The notes beneath the pieces were generated by a model. That model ran no database searches and was not told the origin of the DNA. It saw only the letters and a program-made list of their open reading frames with translations. Below are positions 27,768 through 52,973 of a stretch of DNA of 64,000 bases, one piece after another (position 1 is the first letter of the stretch; each line of letters begins with the position of its first letter). The position numbers and the translations under genes are program-made. The stretch spans positions 124,001 through 188,000 of IMG/VR virus record IMGVR_UViG_3300022839_000006; one strand, written 5' to 3'.

Positions 27768-29480
27768 TTATTTTGTATACTTCAACTTTCCACAATCATA
27801 CACTTTTAAAAACCCGTGATTTAGTGCGTTCTGGTGCTCTGTCAATTCGGGACAAAAAGTGTCAGGATACTTTGCTTGGAGTTTGGCTCTTGTCATTTGC
27901 CTCCGAGGGATTCTCCTCTTTGTAGCTCTACAGTAGTAAGTGTAATCTGGTTTTGTCTGATGGGTCAGACTCATCCCCGACTTTTGATATATGTTGTTTT
28001 CAAAATCAGTCCACAACAAATCAGCATACGTGTAGACGTTGGTAACCTTTGACATTATTTTTGACAGTCCACCTACAACAGGGAGTTTTGACGCAAATCT
28101 TGTAAGATCGTGACTGTCACCATACCGCTTAAATGTCGCAACAGAAACCAACAGACCCTCATGCTCGAGGCCTATGTTGAAAGAGTGATTGACATTCCCT
28201 TGAATGTGATGATGCTCGAGAAACTCCTTACAATCAACATCATATACTACTTTTGTCTTTCTTGCCCCTATAGATATATCTGATGGCTCCAAAAGAGACA
28301 TGATTTTTCGTCGGATTAGATCTGGACCATCTCTTAGATCATCTTCAAACAGGTGGATCAATCTTATACCATTATGTGCAGCATCTTTCTTTTTGTCTAA
28401 ATGATAATTTGTAGGTTTGAATTTCTCGGAGTGCCAATAACAACCATTTATTTCAAACCCTATGTTATAATCAGGGAGAAAGATGTCAATCTCCTTACGG
28501 TCACTCAACAATGTTCTATCATTGAATATAGGAGAATAATCAGCTAGCCATCTACCAACCATGTGCTCGTAGGATGAAGGCTGTCCAATTCCCTTTCTCA
28601 GAATGTCGAAACTATCAAGCATCTCTGCTACAATAGGGTGGCTGCATCCTAGAAATTCGCCCATTTGCTCGAGTGACATCGTTTTATAAAGTTCCTCCAA
28701 CAGAACTTTGTCGTAAAGACCTTCAATGTTTTCTCTTGGTGTTCCTTTTGTAAACACACCCAGTTTGTGTATTTGTGTGTTGATTATGTGATTCTTGACC
28801 TTATATTTTTTCGCAATCTGTGGTATCGTATATTGCTCTCTTAGTTTACGTAGAGTATCAGCACTCTGTATGTCTATATGAATCTCTACATGTGTGTTTC
28901 TTTTTGTGTCTTCTCCAGACTGTTTAATAATATCTGATGCTGTCTGAACACTACAGCCAATTTCTTTTGAACATTGTGTGACATTAGAACCGCTATGCCA
29001 TTGTTTTAATATCTGTGTTTTCACACTCTCTACATCGAACTTAAACTTGTCAAACTTTTTGTACTTTTTGGCCCACTTGGTTACAGTAGAGGGTGCATGT
29101 CCTGTAATTGCTGATATTCCAACAATTGTCTCGCACGAATCGAATAGGATAGGATCGAAGGGGATTGATTTAATCACAACAATCTTGCTAATTCTCACAA
29201 ATCTTCGAACAGAATCTACTGGAACCTCTAACCTGTCTGCAATGACTCTGCAATTGATATTTCCGCTAATATAATCATCCTGAAACTCACAGAACCTACG
29301 CGCGACAATATCATAGAACGTCTCCCTCAATACTACGCCCCAACGATCTGCAAGTTCCTGCACCGACGAAGACGATACGCCGTACGTATTTGCAATGGAA
29401 GAGAAGCTCTCTCCCGAATCGATTAGATCCTGAAAAGAGCTTCTATTAAGAACAGACGTAAGTGTTCCTCTTTTAGACAC
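27768..29480 (-). mobile_element. Hef-like (Vsr/DUF559-type) free-standing homing endonuclease with HTH repeats
   Basis: SSYE...EIDIFLPDYNIGFEINGCYWHS...GIRLIHLFEDD; multiple N-terminal HTH-like repeats; GTG start overlaps the folE stop. Confidence 0.75.
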
Positions 29481-30187
29481 TATGCGCGATTACCTGCAAA
29501 CTGCTGCTGCATTTTCACATTGTCAAAGAACTCTTGCTTGACACTTTGGTTGAAGAATTGTCCCCTAAGTTCTGTTGTTTGAGTCAAAGAGCTGTTTGCC
29601 ATCACTCCTCGTGTGGAACAACATCCGTGTGTAGCTTGGATGTAGACAGCAACATCACGCGTTTCTGTCGCCTTGCTGATCTCGTTAGCAATGTCCATCG
29701 TCAACTGCTCTTGGAGTGTTCCACGACGTGCTGCATGTTGAGCAATTCGAATGTACTTCGAGAGCCCGATCACACTTGATGATGGCAAAACTCCGATATA
29801 TGCGACACCTTGAACGTCCTTGTGGTGGTGACTACACATTGAGTGGATCTCTGCACGTACAACAATCATTCCGCTATACCGTGTATCAGGATCAGTGTTT
29901 GGGAATGAAGTTACAGGTGGAGGTGGCGTGTAGCGACCTCGCATCGTTTCGTTGATGTACATCTTTGCAAGACGCTTTGCTGTTCCCATTGAGTTTGGAT
30001 CTGTATTGCGATCGATAATTAGAGAGTCGAGTACACCTTCAAACTTAATTGCCAATTCATCGATCAGCATATCCGTTTCGCCCTCTTCAATGAATGGCGA
30101 TATGTTGTCATTTGCCCAGAAACGGCTATTACTGTCTTGTATCCGCGCACGTATTGTCTCGGAGATTGTTTTGTTTTCTTTCGTCAT
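29480..30187 (-). CDS. folE: GTP cyclohydrolase I
   Basis: SMCSHH, IGLSKY.R, R..LQE.LT, HGC...RGV; start MTKENK. Confidence 0.95.
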   Translation of the reverse strand: MTKENKTISETIRARIQDSNSRFWANDNISPFIEEGETDMLIDELAIKFEGVLDSLIIDRNTDPNSMGTAKRLAKMYINETMRGRYTPPPPVTSFPNTDPDTRYSGMIVVRAEIHSMCSHHHKDVQGVAYIGVLPSSSVIGLSKYIRIAQHAARRGTLQEQLTMDIANEISKATETRDVAVYIQATHGCCSTRGVMANSSLTQTTELRGQFFNQSVKQEFFDNVKMQQQFAGNRA

Positions 30188-30285
30188 GTTTGTAGTGCCT
30201 TTCAGATTGTGTTTTATGTCAGTGGAAAGGAGCGAGGACTGACACACTCGGCCAACAGAAAACCTTACGGTGCAACCTGTTGGAA
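30188..30285 (-). promoter_or_regulatory. Candidate riboswitch (SD-occluding pseudoknot) in the folE leader
   Basis: Hairpin CCAACAG/CUGUUGG, then stem UGUCAGU/ACUGACA whose loop CCUUUC is complementary to the SD GAAAGG. Confidence 0.5.
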
Positions 30286-30299
30286 AGTCTTGTTGCTTT

Positions 30300-30740
30300 C
30301 TATTGTTGTTCCCAGGGAAATGTGACCCAGGGCGCATCGGCTGGGATCAACATGGCTGTCACATCACTGTTGAATATGCTATCTACTTTTGTAACAAGTG
30401 ATGCGTATACGACGTTGTCTGTGCCGCCATACACATTGTTTATTGAGTTAAAAGTATGACCAGTATCATTGATGTCGTCAACAAATACAACTCTTTTACC
30501 TGATTTTATACCTTCTTTGAGTTCAGAGTTGTGCTCACACTTCTGAACATCGCGTGTTTGCCACACAATAGTTTGGAGCGGCAACTCAAGATGGTGTGAT
30601 AGGTAAAGAGCAGGAAGAAGCCCCCCTCTTGTAATTCCTACAATAATGTCAGGACTATGTGTTTCGACGTGCGTCCTGAGGTGTTTACACATGAGATCAA
30701 TATCATTGTAGCTGATATGCATTTTAGCGACTGTGCTCAT
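30300..30740 (-). CDS. Type I purine phosphoribosyltransferase (Gpt-like)
   Basis: GITRGGL, PRPP-binding VFVDDINDTGHT, W..FPWE. Confidence 0.9.
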   Translation of the reverse strand: MSTVAKMHISYNDIDLMCKHLRTHVETHSPDIIVGITRGGLLPALYLSHHLELPLQTIVWQTRDVQKCEHNSELKEGIKSGKRVVFVDDINDTGHTFNSINNVYGGTDNVVYASLVTKVDSIFNSDVTAMLIPADAPWVTFPWEQQ

Positions 30741-30897: not shown

Positions 30898-31782
30898 TTA
30901 CGCTAAACTGGCATAGAGGTGAATCTGAAGATTGAGAACGTAACCGTGTTCGATGCAGTATTGTGCTGCATATTCATGATTACGTTGATTTGCATCCATA
31001 TCCAACAATCCAGGTTCCCAGAAGCTAATTACCTCATCGACTGTAGATCTTTCTCCGATCTCAATTCTATTTGCTCCACTGTTCCGCAACTCCTTACTCT
31101 TTATTGGCTCGTCGTTGTATACGTTCATTGGACTGATGTAGATTGGCTTGTTTGTCTTTTCGTGCCATTCTTGTGCCCACTCTGGAATTGAGCTGTATGG
31201 GCTGTCCGGATCCGCTTCCATCACGAACTTCAAACAATCCGCATCGATCATGTTGTCTTTGTGTGGTTTGATGTACTTGCCCATCATTCCACCCTTCTCG
31301 ATGCACTTTGGACTCATAACCAAAACCGTTGTTTTCGGAATACTCGATTGATGAACGATCCCATTGGATTCGATTTGAGTATTCTTAAATACCTTATTCA
31401 TCCGTTCCAACAGCGGTCCAATATTCTTCTGTAAGAGGGGTTCACCACCCGTCATTACAAGAACCACTTGCTTTTTAATTCCCGTCAACGGATCATGCAA
31501 AGTCCAATCAGGACGATTCATCCCCTTGTCTGAATAGAATTTGTCTATTGCTGTTTCGATGTTCGCATCGACCTCGTCGAACGTCATCCAATCGCCATCA
31601 TCAAAGAATGTGTCACAAAAACTACAAGCCAGATTACATTTTGCTAATCTAATAAAGAAAGCTGGTTCGCCCCGGAATGGCCCTTCCCCTTGTAAGGTCA
31701 TGAACATCGAAGTGACGAACAACTTGTCTTCTTCTGCGTCCTTAAAATATTTTTGTCCTACTATTTCGTTTTTTCCAAACAT
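30898..31782 (-). CDS. queE: 7-carboxy-7-deazaguanine synthase (radical SAM)
   Basis: TLQGEG...FIRL..CNLACSFCDT, TGGEPLLQ, IESNG, SPK, LQ.H. Confidence 0.93.
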   Translation of the reverse strand: MFGKNEIVGQKYFKDAEEDKLFVTSMFMTLQGEGPFRGEPAFFIRLAKCNLACSFCDTFFDDGDWMTFDEVDANIETAIDKFYSDKGMNRPDWTLHDPLTGIKKQVVLVMTGGEPLLQKNIGPLLERMNKVFKNTQIESNGIVHQSSIPKTTVLVMSPKCIEKGGMMGKYIKPHKDNMIDADCLKFVMEADPDSPYSSIPEWAQEWHEKTNKPIYISPMNVYNDEPIKSKELRNSGANRIEIGERSTVDEVISFWEPGLLDMDANQRNHEYAAQYCIEHGYVLNLQIHLYASLA

Positions 31783-31846
31783 TACATGTCCTTATTTCTT
31801 GAGTGTTGAAATTTCATTGATCAGTTGAAACTGTGTGTCGTTCACT

Positions 31847-32491
31847 TTACGGTGTGCCACAAGAGCATTCATGATCTCCTTGCTCGATTTTTGTTAGATG
31901 TGACCAGGATCCAAGACGCTCAATCGCATCGATTGGCGCTTCCCAATCCCATCGTGATTTGATAGGAAGAGTTTCGTGACCGCCATCAATCTTACTATTT
32001 GCATCAGCAAAGGCTGTTTGTTTATCTACTTCGCACATTGCATCGTTGCGGTTGTGCTCATATACACGTACACGTTCTACATAACAGCGTCCGTCCGTTA
32101 CCTTATACACGTAATGGTTGACGTGCTCCCAGATAAACAGCGAGCTCATTTCCATAGATACACCACTTGGCAATACACGCAACGTGCCAAGTATGCCACC
32201 AGGCGCTGTCAGTTCGGACGTGATTTGTCCAAGTCTCGGATCGTCAGCAGGAAGTACTGTGACGTGATCGAAGTAATATTCGAGGAAGTGTTTCACAGGA
32301 CCGAGTTCACCAAACGGAACAATCCATCCATGTGGATCAATCTCTCCTGCAAATGTAAACTCAACTTCACGATCGTATCCGTGAACGCTTGCACAATCAC
32401 CTGGCGTGCCGTCAGGATTCTTGTCAAAATGTTGTGCATGGCCACACGGAAGGTACTTGAACACCTTCGTTGCCTTAATTTGTATTGCCAT
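31847..32491 (-). CDS. queD: 6-carboxytetrahydropterin synthase
   Basis: CGHAQ...CASVHGY, FDH, S.E, V.E...N motifs of the QueD/PTPS family; adjacent to queE. Confidence 0.85.
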   Translation of the reverse strand: MAIQIKATKVFKYLPCGHAQHFDKNPDGTPGDCASVHGYDREVEFTFAGEIDPHGWIVPFGELGPVKHFLEYYFDHVTVLPADDPRLGQITSELTAPGGILGTLRVLPSGVSMEMSSLFIWEHVNHYVYKVTDGRCYVERVRVYEHNRNDAMCEVDKQTAFADANSKIDGGHETLPIKSRWDWEAPIDAIERLGSWSHLTKIEQGDHECSCGTP

Positions 32492-33263: not shown

Positions 33264-34976
33264 TCAAGCGAAAAAGTCTTCCAACGTGTCAACCTTTGTG
33301 GCAGACCACCCCAATGAGTCGAGAATGTTTTGAATTGGATCTAGGAACACTTTTGAGAACTGCTTCTCTCTGTCAACGTAATTGTCTATTTCCATTTCAG
33401 CAGGAGGACTCTCAATGAACGATATTATATTTTCGCGAAGAGGATTCGGCAGCTTCAAGTACACGAACTTGATTTTGTCTCCTGACTGTATAAGAGGATA
33501 ACGATTGACGAGGTCATTGTCTACAGTCCACTTGTTTGATAGAAGACAACCACGGATGTGAATTGGACAGGCCTTTTTGTATATCGTCCTTGGATCAGCA
33601 TAGCCATCCACGTCGTTGGTCCCAGAGACCTTAGCTATGTGTTGAACAGACAAACCAAAAAACTCCTCCTTGAAGTCTCTTATAAATTCCTGTGTCTCAG
33701 ACTCGCCTTGCGTAACAATGATCTTAAACGCTTCAAAAAACTTCTTTCTACATATTTCTGGTGTAGAGCTTCTTGCCGCATCAATTCCCGTGACAGACAC
33801 CTTTGGCTCATCATAGTGAACACCCTCACTATTAAGAACATTTAATATGTATCGCTTCTTTGCAACAAAGATGGCCTTGTCTGCAATCTTTTCACGTTTC
33901 ATTTTCATTGCATTACGATATGCACCCATTCTTTCAGCTAAATCATCATACGCATCGTCAAGCAACGGCTCAATCTTTTCTTTGCACACTTTGTCAATAA
34001 AAGACTCGCCTTGCTCGCGCGTAACATTGACGGTTCCAAACACCTTTTCGACGAGTGGACCAAGATTGACATACACACTGTCTGTGTCGCAATACACACA
34101 ATAATCAACATCTGTCGTTTTGAGCACTTTGTTTACGTACATGTTAATTGCCTGTGCGGCCCACTTGGTGGAAAGCTGTCCTGACGTTGTAATGCCCTCA
34201 GCCATGTCACTAATGTAGTAGATAAAAAATGCGTTGGCTGTACTTCCATAAAGTCCGTTCATTAGAATCTTGATGGACATTTGGCTGTTGTGTAGCTGGG
34301 TTATCAGCTTTTTCAACCGTACAATTTCATCCTTCGTTGTTGCTATCTCAAGCTCAGACTCTGCCATGAGCATCTTTACTTTGATCTCTGCACGTTCGTC
34401 GTAGTATCCTTGAATGATCTGAGGAATGATCCCCTCACGTTCTTTAGAGAAGCAAGCTCCATTTGCTGCTACTGCATACTTGGTCGTGTTTTTGTAGTTG
34501 CCGTCTAGTACAATCTGTTGTGACACGTCCTCTTTTACGTTGTGTTGATATGTTTCTGGTGACATGTTGTATTGCATCATTAAGTGCGGATAAAGGCTGT
34601 TAAGGTCAAAGGACACAACCCAATCTTTCATTCCCTTTTGTGGGTCCTTTACATATCCACCAACGATGCCCCTTGCACTTTCCTCTGATGCAGATTTGAT
34701 GAATGGTACGCGTCCTTGATCCATTAGGGCTCTGAATATAGTGGTATCCCACAGTCCCACAGTTCCAAACGCCTCGTTAAAATTGACACCACTCTTGTAT
34801 GCAACAGTAAACGACAGTGCAAGAAGAGCTACTTGCTCTTCAAACATCTCAACAAGCCTCGTGTCATACAAGTTGTAATCCAATCCAAGCTGATAATATT
34901 CACGATCGGCAAGGTCGGAATACTTGCGATGCATTTCAAGCAACTGCTTGTCCGTTAGGTCCTTCATATCTTCCAT
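33264..34976 (-). CDS. gp43: Family B DNA polymerase gp43, C-terminal subunit (ExoIII + polymerase)
   Basis: YNLYD (ExoIII), DLNSLYP, K..MNGLYG, YCDTDS, KKRY, clamp-binding tail LEDFF; own GGAGA SD. Confidence 0.93.
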   Translation of the reverse strand: MEDMKDLTDKQLLEMHRKYSDLADREYYQLGLDYNLYDTRLVEMFEEQVALLALSFTVAYKSGVNFNEAFGTVGLWDTTIFRALMDQGRVPFIKSASEESARGIVGGYVKDPQKGMKDWVVSFDLNSLYPHLMMQYNMSPETYQHNVKEDVSQQIVLDGNYKNTTKYAVAANGACFSKEREGIIPQIIQGYYDERAEIKVKMLMAESELEIATTKDEIVRLKKLITQLHNSQMSIKILMNGLYGSTANAFFIYYISDMAEGITTSGQLSTKWAAQAINMYVNKVLKTTDVDYCVYCDTDSVYVNLGPLVEKVFGTVNVTREQGESFIDKVCKEKIEPLLDDAYDDLAERMGAYRNAMKMKREKIADKAIFVAKKRYILNVLNSEGVHYDEPKVSVTGIDAARSSTPEICRKKFFEAFKIIVTQGESETQEFIRDFKEEFFGLSVQHIAKVSGTNDVDGYADPRTIYKKACPIHIRGCLLSNKWTVDNDLVNRYPLIQSGDKIKFVYLKLPNPLRENIISFIESPPAEMEIDNYVDREKQFSKVFLDPIQNILDSLGWSATKVDTLEDFFA

Positions 34977-35070: not shown

Positions 35071-36117
35071 CTAGACAGAAAGTCCTCTACGCTGGATTTC
35101 TTCCAGCAAAACGTCCCTTCGTTTTACACACATTTCTCCATGTGTCAGTACATCATCGGGAAGGTCGCGCGATATTTTTACGTCCTTGGCTCCATCAGAA
35201 ATGAATCGGTGAGTATCAACTTTGTTTCCGTGCGCCTCATAAGAAAGCTTCTTTGTGCCAAGTACAATCGTAGCGACGTTATCAAGCTTGTATGACTGCA
35301 TCGTGCCGTACTTGTATCCGAACTTCTTAAATGCATTCATGTAATCGACAATGCTGATACCGCTAATTACGTATGTTTTTTGCATCTTATTGAACATCTC
35401 GAACGACCGTTCGCGAACATGTCCCCACGGCGAAAGTCGTTTGACAGCAGCCATTCCAAGTATGTTTTCAATTCTCTTTACAATATACGTGATGTCAAAC
35501 AGCTCGACGTTCCACCCCGTGACAACATCTGGATAGTCACTACACCACAAATCGACAAACCTGTTCAGCATGTCATACTCTGATTGACACTTGTGGTACT
35601 TGATCAATGAGGGATCAATTCCTGTTATAGTCTTTTCTGGATCGTAGTCTTTTGTACCAAACATGTAGTAATTAGACGATTTAGACGATTTAATTGCGAC
35701 AGACGTAATCTCGTTGTCTGCAGTCTCCATGTCAGGCTTCTTCTTGCTGATATCTACCTCGATGTCAAAGGTAAAGATGTTAATCAGCGAAGGATCAAAA
35801 TCAATGGTACCAGGATACATGTCATATGTGAAAGACGCGACGTAATTGGTATTCCCACACATGACCATGTTCTGAACGTCTTTGTACCTCTCCACAAATT
35901 CTGTTGCACGCTTCATGTCATCACACTGGATCGACTTCAATGGCCTGTCACCTATTAACGACACGTGCGATGGCTTTTGGTCCTCATTCTGACGATCCTC
36001 TACGTAGAATGTAGGCTGATACTTGACCTTCTTGTAGAACCGTTTGCCGTTGTCATATCCTGTCCATAGGATATCATTTCCATAACGTTCGATCTTTGTG
36101 TACATCGTGTTGTTCAT
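35071..36117 (-). CDS. gp43: DNA polymerase gp43, N-terminal subunit (NTD + ExoI/II)
   Basis: FDIEV (ExoI), TGWNVELFDITY (ExoII), SYKLD.VA...LG..KL.Y, then a ~50-aa non-polymerase tail. Confidence 0.92.
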   Translation of the reverse strand: MNNTMYTKIERYGNDILWTGYDNGKRFYKKVKYQPTFYVEDRQNEDQKPSHVSLIGDRPLKSIQCDDMKRATEFVERYKDVQNMVMCGNTNYVASFTYDMYPGTIDFDPSLINIFTFDIEVDISKKKPDMETADNEITSVAIKSSKSSNYYMFGTKDYDPEKTITGIDPSLIKYHKCQSEYDMLNRFVDLWCSDYPDVVTGWNVELFDITYIVKRIENILGMAAVKRLSPWGHVRERSFEMFNKMQKTYVISGISIVDYMNAFKKFGYKYGTMQSYKLDNVATIVLGTKKLSYEAHGNKVDTHRFISDGAKDVKISRDLPDDVLTHGEMCVKRRDVLLEEIQRRGLSV

Positions 36118-52191: not shown

Positions 52192-52368
52192 ATGCAAAAA
52201 GAAACACGAGCTCTGATTCATACAATCAACAACAATTATTTCACACCTATCAGTTTGTATTCTAAAACTGATAGGGTGGTGGCGAAACTCTGTCCCAAAA
52301 TTGGGAACACAGAAGGTAAAAAGTACATCCGCATTTCTTTAAACGGATCTGCGTGGACGGGAGCTTGA
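52192..52368 (+). CDS. Small hypothetical protein (58 aa)
   Basis: Manual ORF MQKETRALIH...; its stop overlaps the TTG start of tilS. Confidence 0.45.
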   Translation: MQKETRALIHTINNNYFTPISLYSKTDRVVAKLCPKIGNTEGKKYIRISLNGSAWTGA

Positions 52369-52973
52369 TTAAAATTCAAGGGAAAATTGACCGTGAAGTA
52401 AACGTTGCCTGCTCAGGTGGAATCGACTCCATGGCTGTTGTCGACTTCCTGATGCAAAACCACAAAGTGAATTTGTTGTTTTTTGATCATGGCACAGAGA
52501 CATCAACAGATGCAAGAAACTTCATCACAGAAAAATTCACACAAAGAGAGTTTTCTGATGATACGCGTGTCGAATTTGGCAACGTCCAAAACACAAAATC
52601 GAAATCAGAATCGTGGGAAGAGTACTGGAGGAATGAACGGTATGCGTGGTTCCACTCATTTGACAGCCCTGTTATTACCTGCCACCATCTTGACGATTGT
52701 GTTGAAACGTGGCTGTGGTCATCCATTCACGGGAATGGTAAGATTATCCCATATGCAAACCTAAACGTCATCCGTCCGTTCCGCCAGAACAGAAAAGCAG
52801 AATTTGCCAACTGGGCAAGACGTAAAGATGTGTCATGGATCGAAGACGTGTCCAATCAAGATGTGAAATATATGAGAAACTTCATTCGTCGTGATCTGAT
52901 GCCAAAAGCATTGGTTGTCAACCCTGGACTGCACAAAGTTGTGGAAAAGAAGGTTGGGGCAGATGCACCCTAA
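52365..52973 (+). CDS. tilS: tRNA(Ile)-lysidine synthetase, catalytic domain only
   Basis: PP-loop SGGIDS, E...R..RY, HHLDD..ET, IRP, W.ED.SN...RN.IR. Confidence 0.88.
   Translation: MIKIQGKIDREVNVACSGGIDSMAVVDFLMQNHKVNLLFFDHGTETSTDARNFITEKFTQREFSDDTRVEFGNVQNTKSKSESWEEYWRNERYAWFHSFDSPVITCHHLDDCVETWLWSSIHGNGKIIPYANLNVIRPFRQNRKAEFANWARRKDVSWIEDVSNQDVKYMRNFIRRDLMPKALVVNPGLHKVVEKKVGADAP

Follow-up and report, generated by a model that had tools for sequence, protein, structure and literature searches.

The 112 bases in front of the folE gene of an uncultured T4-like phage are one copy of a conserved, apparently undescribed RNA leader with two pseudoknots, one of which pairs with the ribosome-binding site and would hide it, and the leader is probably a new riboswitch-like control on the first step of 7-deazaguanine synthesis. 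Comparison of 19 distinct versions of this leader, all found in uncultured viral contigs directly upstream of a folE start codon, supports five helices by covariation, whereas no Rfam 15 model, including those for preQ1-I, preQ1-II, preQ1-III and THF-II/folE, matches it.

The analysed stretch (the window) comprises 64,000 nucleotides of the IMG/VR record IMGVR_UViG_3300022839_000006, assembled from salt-lake metagenomes, and encodes clamp and clamp loader proteins (gp44/gp45), UvsY, a baseplate protein, gp46/47-like proteins and topoisomerase II, as expected for a T4-like phage. The original prediction, made from this sequence alone, described on the minus strand two hairpins, a pyrimidine loop, an A-rich linker and a Shine-Dalgarno (SD) sequence complementary to the loop, and read them as a class II preQ1 riboswitch architecture without its P4 hairpin, acting as a feedback OFF switch that senses a deazapurine or pterin. 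Every element of that description is present (Table 1), so the observation is confirmed. The interpretation is only partly supported, since an SD-sequestering pseudoknot on folE is the right kind of idea, but the family assignment fails, and the model omitted a fifth helix and thus the 5' pseudoknot domain, which is half of the conserved element. The proposed SD is credible, given that AAGG is the commonest 4-mer in the 20 nt upstream of 52 window ORFs (20 of 52), at similar spacings. In the single sequence, however, the fold is not beyond chance, with a minimum free energy of -25.9 kcal/mol against -24.95 +/- 3.5 for shuffles (z = -0.27).

Table 1. Features of the folE leader, its gene neighbourhood and related loci. 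Positions are those of the window unless a contig is named; percentages and compensatory changes refer to the 19-sequence alignment, and A4 and A6 are two alignments of the leader family.
Position	Strand	Feature	Sequence or motif	Evidence and remarks
30292-30296	-	Stem A, 5' strand	GCAAC	Starts 4 nt after the stop codon of the upstream gene; pairs with 30272-30276 to make pseudoknot 1; absent from the original prediction; 97.9% paired, 2 pairs changed on both sides; G-C changes to A-U in 3 sequences, plus one U-G and one A-U at the next pair
30284-30291	-	Loop L1 of pseudoknot 1	AAGACUUU	Family consensus purine-rich, ending in UU; the U just before stem B is nearly invariant (A4, A6)
30277-30283	-	Stem B, 5' strand (outer stem of the predicted hairpin 1)	CCAACAG; family CCAGNN	96.5% paired, 5 of 6 pairs compensatory; predicted independently by RNAalifold
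30272-30276	-	Stem A, 3' strand	GUUGC	Directly 3' of the stem B 5' strand
30262-30271	-	Stem C, small variable hairpin in loop 3 of pseudoknot 1	ACC-GUAA-GGU (GNRA cap)	98.1% paired, 2 of 3 pairs compensatory; length and cap vary among members, e.g. GAAA or UCCG, or longer stems
30259-30261	-	Conserved U-tract between stem C and the stem B 3' strand	UUUU/UUUUU in the family	Invariant T columns (A4, A6)
30252-30258	-	Stem B, 3' strand	CUGUUGG; family NNCUGG	As for the 5' strand
30245-30251	-	Junction between the two domains	CCGAGUG; CGCAGG in most members	Conserved in A6; no pairing partner found
30238-30244	-	Stem D, 5' strand (the predicted 7-bp stem)	UGUCAGU	96.2% paired; 3 pairs compensatory in 4-10 sequences each; the two top pairs, G-C and U-A, never vary in 19 sequences, although the pairs below covary freely
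30224-30237	-	Loop of hairpin 2 (hairpin D), 14 nt	CCUCGCUCCUUUCC	Invariant CCUC on its 5' side; anti-SD CCUUUC at 30225-30230; helix E 96.4% paired, 4 of 6 pairs compensatory
30217-30223	-	Stem D, 3' strand	ACUGACA	Begins with the invariant AC
30204-30216	-	Conserved A-rich linker L3, 13 nt	UAAAACACAAUCU	Family blocks UUAAAC and AAUCUG, nearly invariant (A4, A6)
30198-30203	-	Shine-Dalgarno, 3' strand of helix E	GAAAGG	10 nt before the folE AUG (30187-30185)
29480-30187	-	folE (GTP cyclohydrolase I, 235 aa), the putatively regulated gene		Pfam PF01227, E = 3e-37
29480-30337	-	folE frame left open through the leader to an ATG inside the upstream gene		A gene caller could annotate a 285-aa FolE that swallows the RNA element
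30300-30740	-	Upstream phosphoribosyltransferase (PRT)-domain gene		Pfam PF00156, PHROG 8995; stop codon abuts the leader
30898-32491	-	queE-like radical SAM gene (30898-31782) and queD (31847-32491)		Pfam PF04055 (weak) and PF01242
27768-29480	-	570-aa homing endonuclease (HTH domains)		PHROG 3339; starts with GTG, sharing one base with the folE stop codon
45047-46201		Second homing-endonuclease-like gene		
33264-34976 and 35071-36117	-	Family B DNA polymerase split into separate exonuclease-domain and polymerase-domain ORFs		94 nt apart; a single 848-aa ORF in the relative L236
49128-50465, 60365-61255	+	CCA-adding enzyme/poly(A) polymerase-family gene with an HD domain, and an RlaP-type nucleotidyltransferase (RNA repair family)		
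52353-52973	+	PP-loop ATPase		PF01171
29480-32491; L213:4078-6659; L236:6075-8115	- (window)	PRT + QueD + QueE-like + FolE cluster		Same cluster order in contigs L213 and L236
L213:4866-4880	-	T4-late-promoter-like sequence	TATAAATA/CTAAATA	Also in L194, L225 and L209
L092:510-1450		Region compared with L007		
L079:1456-1488, L020:1462-1494 and about 65 other loci		30-nt motif directly before folE in related phages		
L277:1253-1283		folE leader of Vibrio phage 2.275.O (MG592671.1)	Hairpin UGCGG/CCGCA, loop ending in UC; tail UUAAAAAAACUA	

Structural conservation among phage folE leaders had been named beforehand as a test of the prediction, and it was here that the evidence was found. A short-word BLASTN of the leader against the first 86 related loci missed the homologues, which were instead recognised by reading intergenic regions; contig L007, whose FolE is 71% identical, carries a leader that by eye shows the same layout with compensatory changes in both hairpins. 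FolE-based locus searches and two independent exact sequence patterns built from the conserved blocks and scanned against IMG/VR raised the number of distinct versions to 19. Every genuine match lies directly 5' of a folE ATG, and the remaining pattern hits are chance matches in coding sequence, as were most hits of a looser loop pattern in viral contigs. A search for the 5' domain joined to other expression platforms or genes likewise returned only full two-domain folE leaders as genuine matches.

On the 19-sequence alignment, 96.8% of cells in the five helices are standard pairs, against 81.6 +/- 1.0 in shuffles, 16 of 27 pairs show changes on both sides, and the covariation score is 0.441 against 0.158, with 0 of 500 shuffles reaching any of these values; sliding the partners by 1-3 columns drops pairing to 34-48%. 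A 14-sequence MAFFT alignment agrees, and RNAalifold alone recovers stems B, C and D. The covariance model used to fit the alignment contained only these three stems, so the pairing of helices A and E was not imposed by it. Nevertheless, the sequences are phylogenetically related and the shuffle tests therefore overstate independence, while stem A rests on few independent changes and 5 of the 19 sequences were selected with a pattern that required GCAAC/GUUGC. In helix E, the length of the U-run in the loop follows that of the A-run in the SD (U4/A4, U3/A3, U2/A2), and U-to-C changes in the loop meet A-to-G changes in the SD. The loop/SD duplexes are stronger with their own partner than with permuted partners (-7.73 against -6.58 kcal/mol, p = 0.019), although this test covers only 11 unique pairs and pyrimidine loops are complementary to purine-rich SDs by composition. 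A pairing of the inter-domain junction with the 5' part of the hairpin D loop was also considered, but by eye it is not consistent across members. About 30 unpaired positions are invariant or nearly so, namely GUCCUC and CCAC in the hairpin D loop, UUAAAC and AAUCUG in the linker, the U-tract and the U before stem B, which is typical of ligand-binding RNAs.

The leader is more conserved than synonymous sites in the flanking genes. Between the window and the near-identical contig L003 (L004 is equivalent in this respect), 112 of 113 leader positions are identical, while third codon positions are 87.7% (folE) and 79.6% (PRT gene) identical. Between L007 and a further contig, L092, the leader is 100% identical, whereas the folE genes are only 90% identical (third positions 79.6%) and the upstream 300 nt are 93% identical, which suggests very strong constraint or a recent recombination patch covering just the leader. 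The leader precedes two FolE clades that share only 36% identity, within the same PRT-QueD-QueE-leader-FolE cluster; it may therefore have been inherited with the upstream genes rather than acquired twice. No QueC or transglycosylase turned up among the roughly 45 window ORFs scanned, and the phosphoribosyltransferase hints that the deazapurine base is turned into a nucleotide rather than swapped into DNA.

The element is non-coding, since the folE frame, although open through the leader in the window, is closed in L003/L004 and L007, and indels among members are not multiples of three. It is not a repeated or mobile cassette either, as the covariance model finds one copy in the window and none elsewhere in 1.48 Mb of related phage DNA, and the linker motif occurs once in the window. 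In this phage the leader follows the upstream stop codon directly and no sigma-70-like promoter or terminator was found in the gap, so it must act within a polycistronic mRNA, i.e. on translation. About half of the large leaders are preceded, 6-10 nt upstream, by the late-promoter-like sequence listed in Table 1, which the leader in the window lacks. Control of the T4-lysozyme type, with a promoter inside a hairpin, was rejected because no promoter lies inside the structure and the late-promoter-like sequences, where they exist, lie upstream of the whole element.

Both exact patterns gave zero hits in one genome each of 185,579 bacterial and archaeal species, BLASTN of two leaders found nothing in 50,697 GenBank phage records, and literature searches found no description of a folE-linked RNA element in phages. 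Many close relatives have no leader at all, folE there overlapping or abutting the upstream gene, and the control is dispensable. Related phages carry instead a different 30-nt motif at the same place, consisting of a 4-bp stem, a loop A-U-C-C-N-C, a linker (U)UAAC(A)UC and then GGAGA; of 74 matches across 1.62 Mb of related contigs, 67 are immediately before folE and 2 more precede a small ORF in front of folE. All four of its stem pairs covary (score 0.462 against 0.100), and its loop UCC can pair with GGA of the SD, but those bases are invariant. This motif shares UCCAC before the 3' strand and UUAAC after it with the 3' domain of the large element, and has preQ1-I-like features (a C just before the 3' strand, the UUAAC tail and the loop/SD complementarity), yet it is detected neither by our covariance model nor by Rfam. 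It may be a second, minimal folE-specific riboswitch candidate. Loci with this motif, such as L078 and L074, carry TTGACA-N17-TATAAT promoters with a conserved CCTAAATA in the spacer, again absent from the leader in the window. In addition, the isolate Vibrio phage 2.275.O, with 55% identical FolE and upstream genes annotated as queuosine biosynthesis, has before folE a preQ1-I-like hairpin with an A-rich CUA tail that matches RF00522 only far below threshold (12.5 bits against a cut-off of 39, E = 2.2). Several RNA solutions at one gene is the pattern seen for riboswitch ligands with several classes, and three different structured leaders at folE fit, but do not prove, a shared metabolite signal.

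Taken together, window positions 30185-30296 (minus strand) are best explained as one member of a conserved, roughly 115-nt cis-acting mRNA leader found only in front of folE in uncultured T4-like aquatic phages, with a 5' HLout-type pseudoknot (stems A and B, hairpin C and the U-tract in loop 3) and a 3' hairpin D whose loop pairs with the SD across the linker. What the comparison establishes is the five helices and their covariation, purifying selection on the leader, its single-copy status and its exclusive link to folE. The remainder is inferred from sequence alone, no RNA-seq run holding this phage having been listed: that formation of helix E blocks 30S binding and so lowers FolE translation; that a small molecule held by the conserved unpaired bases, in the 5' pseudoknot, at the D/E junction or both, sets how often helix E forms, which would make the element a riboswitch; and that this molecule is most plausibly a product of the FolE-QueD-QueE branch (CDG, preQ0 or preQ1, or a nucleotide of one), giving feedback on the GTP-consuming first step. 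No conserved alternative (ON-state) pairing was found among the leaders, so switching is not demonstrated, and we hold this explanation with moderate confidence only. A bolder reading, possible but tentative, is that of a new riboswitch class so far seen only in phages, whose double-pseudoknot aptamer senses an intermediate of 7-deazaguanine synthesis (CDG or preQ0, or their nucleotides) and throttles GTP cyclohydrolase I, the phage thereby balancing DNA hypermodification against the GTP pool; the 30-nt hairpin-UAAC-UCGGAG motif of sister phages would then be a second, minimal class for the same signal. Riboswitches encoded by phages are rare, and those known to us belong to classes first found in bacteria. 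If this RNA binds a metabolite, it would add a class to the pseudoknot riboswitches, show that phages regulate the flux into 7-deazaguanine DNA modification, and give a compact sensor for a deazapurine or pterin intermediate.

Other explanations are considered unlikely, although they cannot all be excluded. The element might be a very divergent relative of preQ1-I (type III-like) and/or preQ1-III that still binds preQ1 or preQ0, that is, a subtype of a known class, as suggested by the resemblances described below and by the weak RF00522 match in Vibrio phage 2.275.O, but neither RF00522 nor RF02680 gives a hit, hairpin D lies outside stem B, unlike P4 of class III, and the loop and helix E are much larger than in class I. 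About equally unlikely is a protein-binding translational operator, recognised by FolE itself, another pathway enzyme or a general repressor of the RegA kind. T4-like phages use RNA-binding translational repressors, and the invariant single-stranded blocks could be protein contacts; however, two pseudoknots with about 30 invariant unpaired bases are more than known phage operators need, restriction to one gene makes a general repressor unlikely, and FolE differs by 64% between the two clades while the RNA stays the same, which argues against autoregulation by FolE. Should it prove to be such an operator, it would still mark a control point on a pathway for whose regulation in phages we know of no study. 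Less likely still is a constitutive structure without a sensor, either a fixed attenuator setting a low FolE translation rate within the polycistronic mRNA or an mRNA-stability or processing element. SD occlusion alone would lower translation, no ON-state pairing is conserved and many relatives do without any leader, but a fixed attenuator needs only a hairpin over the SD and explains neither the 5' pseudoknot domain, nor the invariant unpaired blocks, nor near-perfect leader conservation against 12-20% divergence at flanking synonymous sites. The originally proposed class II preQ1 riboswitch lacking P4 is very unlikely, having failed on both sequence-model and architecture tests.

Among known systems, the THF-II riboswitch (folE motif) also sits in the 5' leader of folE and controls translation through the SD, but it is a single long hairpin without pseudoknots, found in bacteria, and its model, like every other Rfam family, gave no match. 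The searches covered the whole window at gathering score and, at E <= 10, 3-kb and 141-nt segments around the leader as well as the leader of L213. The comparison with the preQ1 classes rests on PMC11625349, PMC10622847 and PMC11602147. The preQ1-II riboswitch (RF01054) shares the pairing of the complete SD with an anti-SD in a pseudoknot helix across an A-rich linker, as in its P3, and deletion of its P4 is reported to have only a minor effect on preQ1 binding (PMC11625349). Class II, however, is an HLout pseudoknot with helices P1-P4, confined to Bacillota and to queT (COG4708) (PMC11625349), whereas the present element precedes folE in phages, has no P1 or P4 equivalents, shows a 13-nt single strand with no hairpin between hairpin D and the SD in any of 19 members, and contains a 5' pseudoknot domain without counterpart in class II. 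The 3' domain alone recalls the preQ1-I type III riboswitch (part of RF00522; E. coli structure 8fza, as cited in PMC10622847), with a small H-type pseudoknot topology, a pyrimidine-rich loop, AC immediately before the 3' strand of the stem, an A-rich linker beginning UUAA directly after it, and an AAGG-type SD fully paired to the loop. It is about twice the size, with a loop of 12-16 nt instead of 9, a loop-SD helix of 5-7 bp instead of 3 and a 7-bp stem, and it is joined to an extra 60-nt 5' domain; the AC, at the place of the class I specificity base, is invariant in 19 of 19 members and may either be unpaired, as in class I, or pair with an equally invariant GU. The design is nearest to that of the preQ1-III riboswitch (RF02680), which is likewise about 100 nt long, controls translation and has two pseudoknots, the first (HLout) between the 5' end and the junction that follows the 5' strand of the next helix, with a hairpin in the long loop, and the second (P5) between the loop of a separate hairpin, P4, and the SD in the 3' tail (PMC11625349); stem A and helix E correspond to these two. 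Class III occurs before queT in Ruminococcaceae, and its conserved pocket bases are a C after the P1 5' strand, two U for base triples, a U in J2-1 and two A. The conserved junction bases appear to differ: after the stem A 5' strand the phage family has purines (AAGG...), not C-U-U, and no base lies between stem B and the stem A 3' strand, although in the absence of a structure the class III pocket bases (C7, U8, U9, U17, A52, A84, A85) cannot be mapped onto this RNA. In class III, P4 is nested between P3 and the 3' strand of P2 and supplies A-minor bases to the pocket, whereas here hairpin D starts 7 nt after stem B has closed, so that the anti-SD hairpin lies 3' of the closed pseudoknot.
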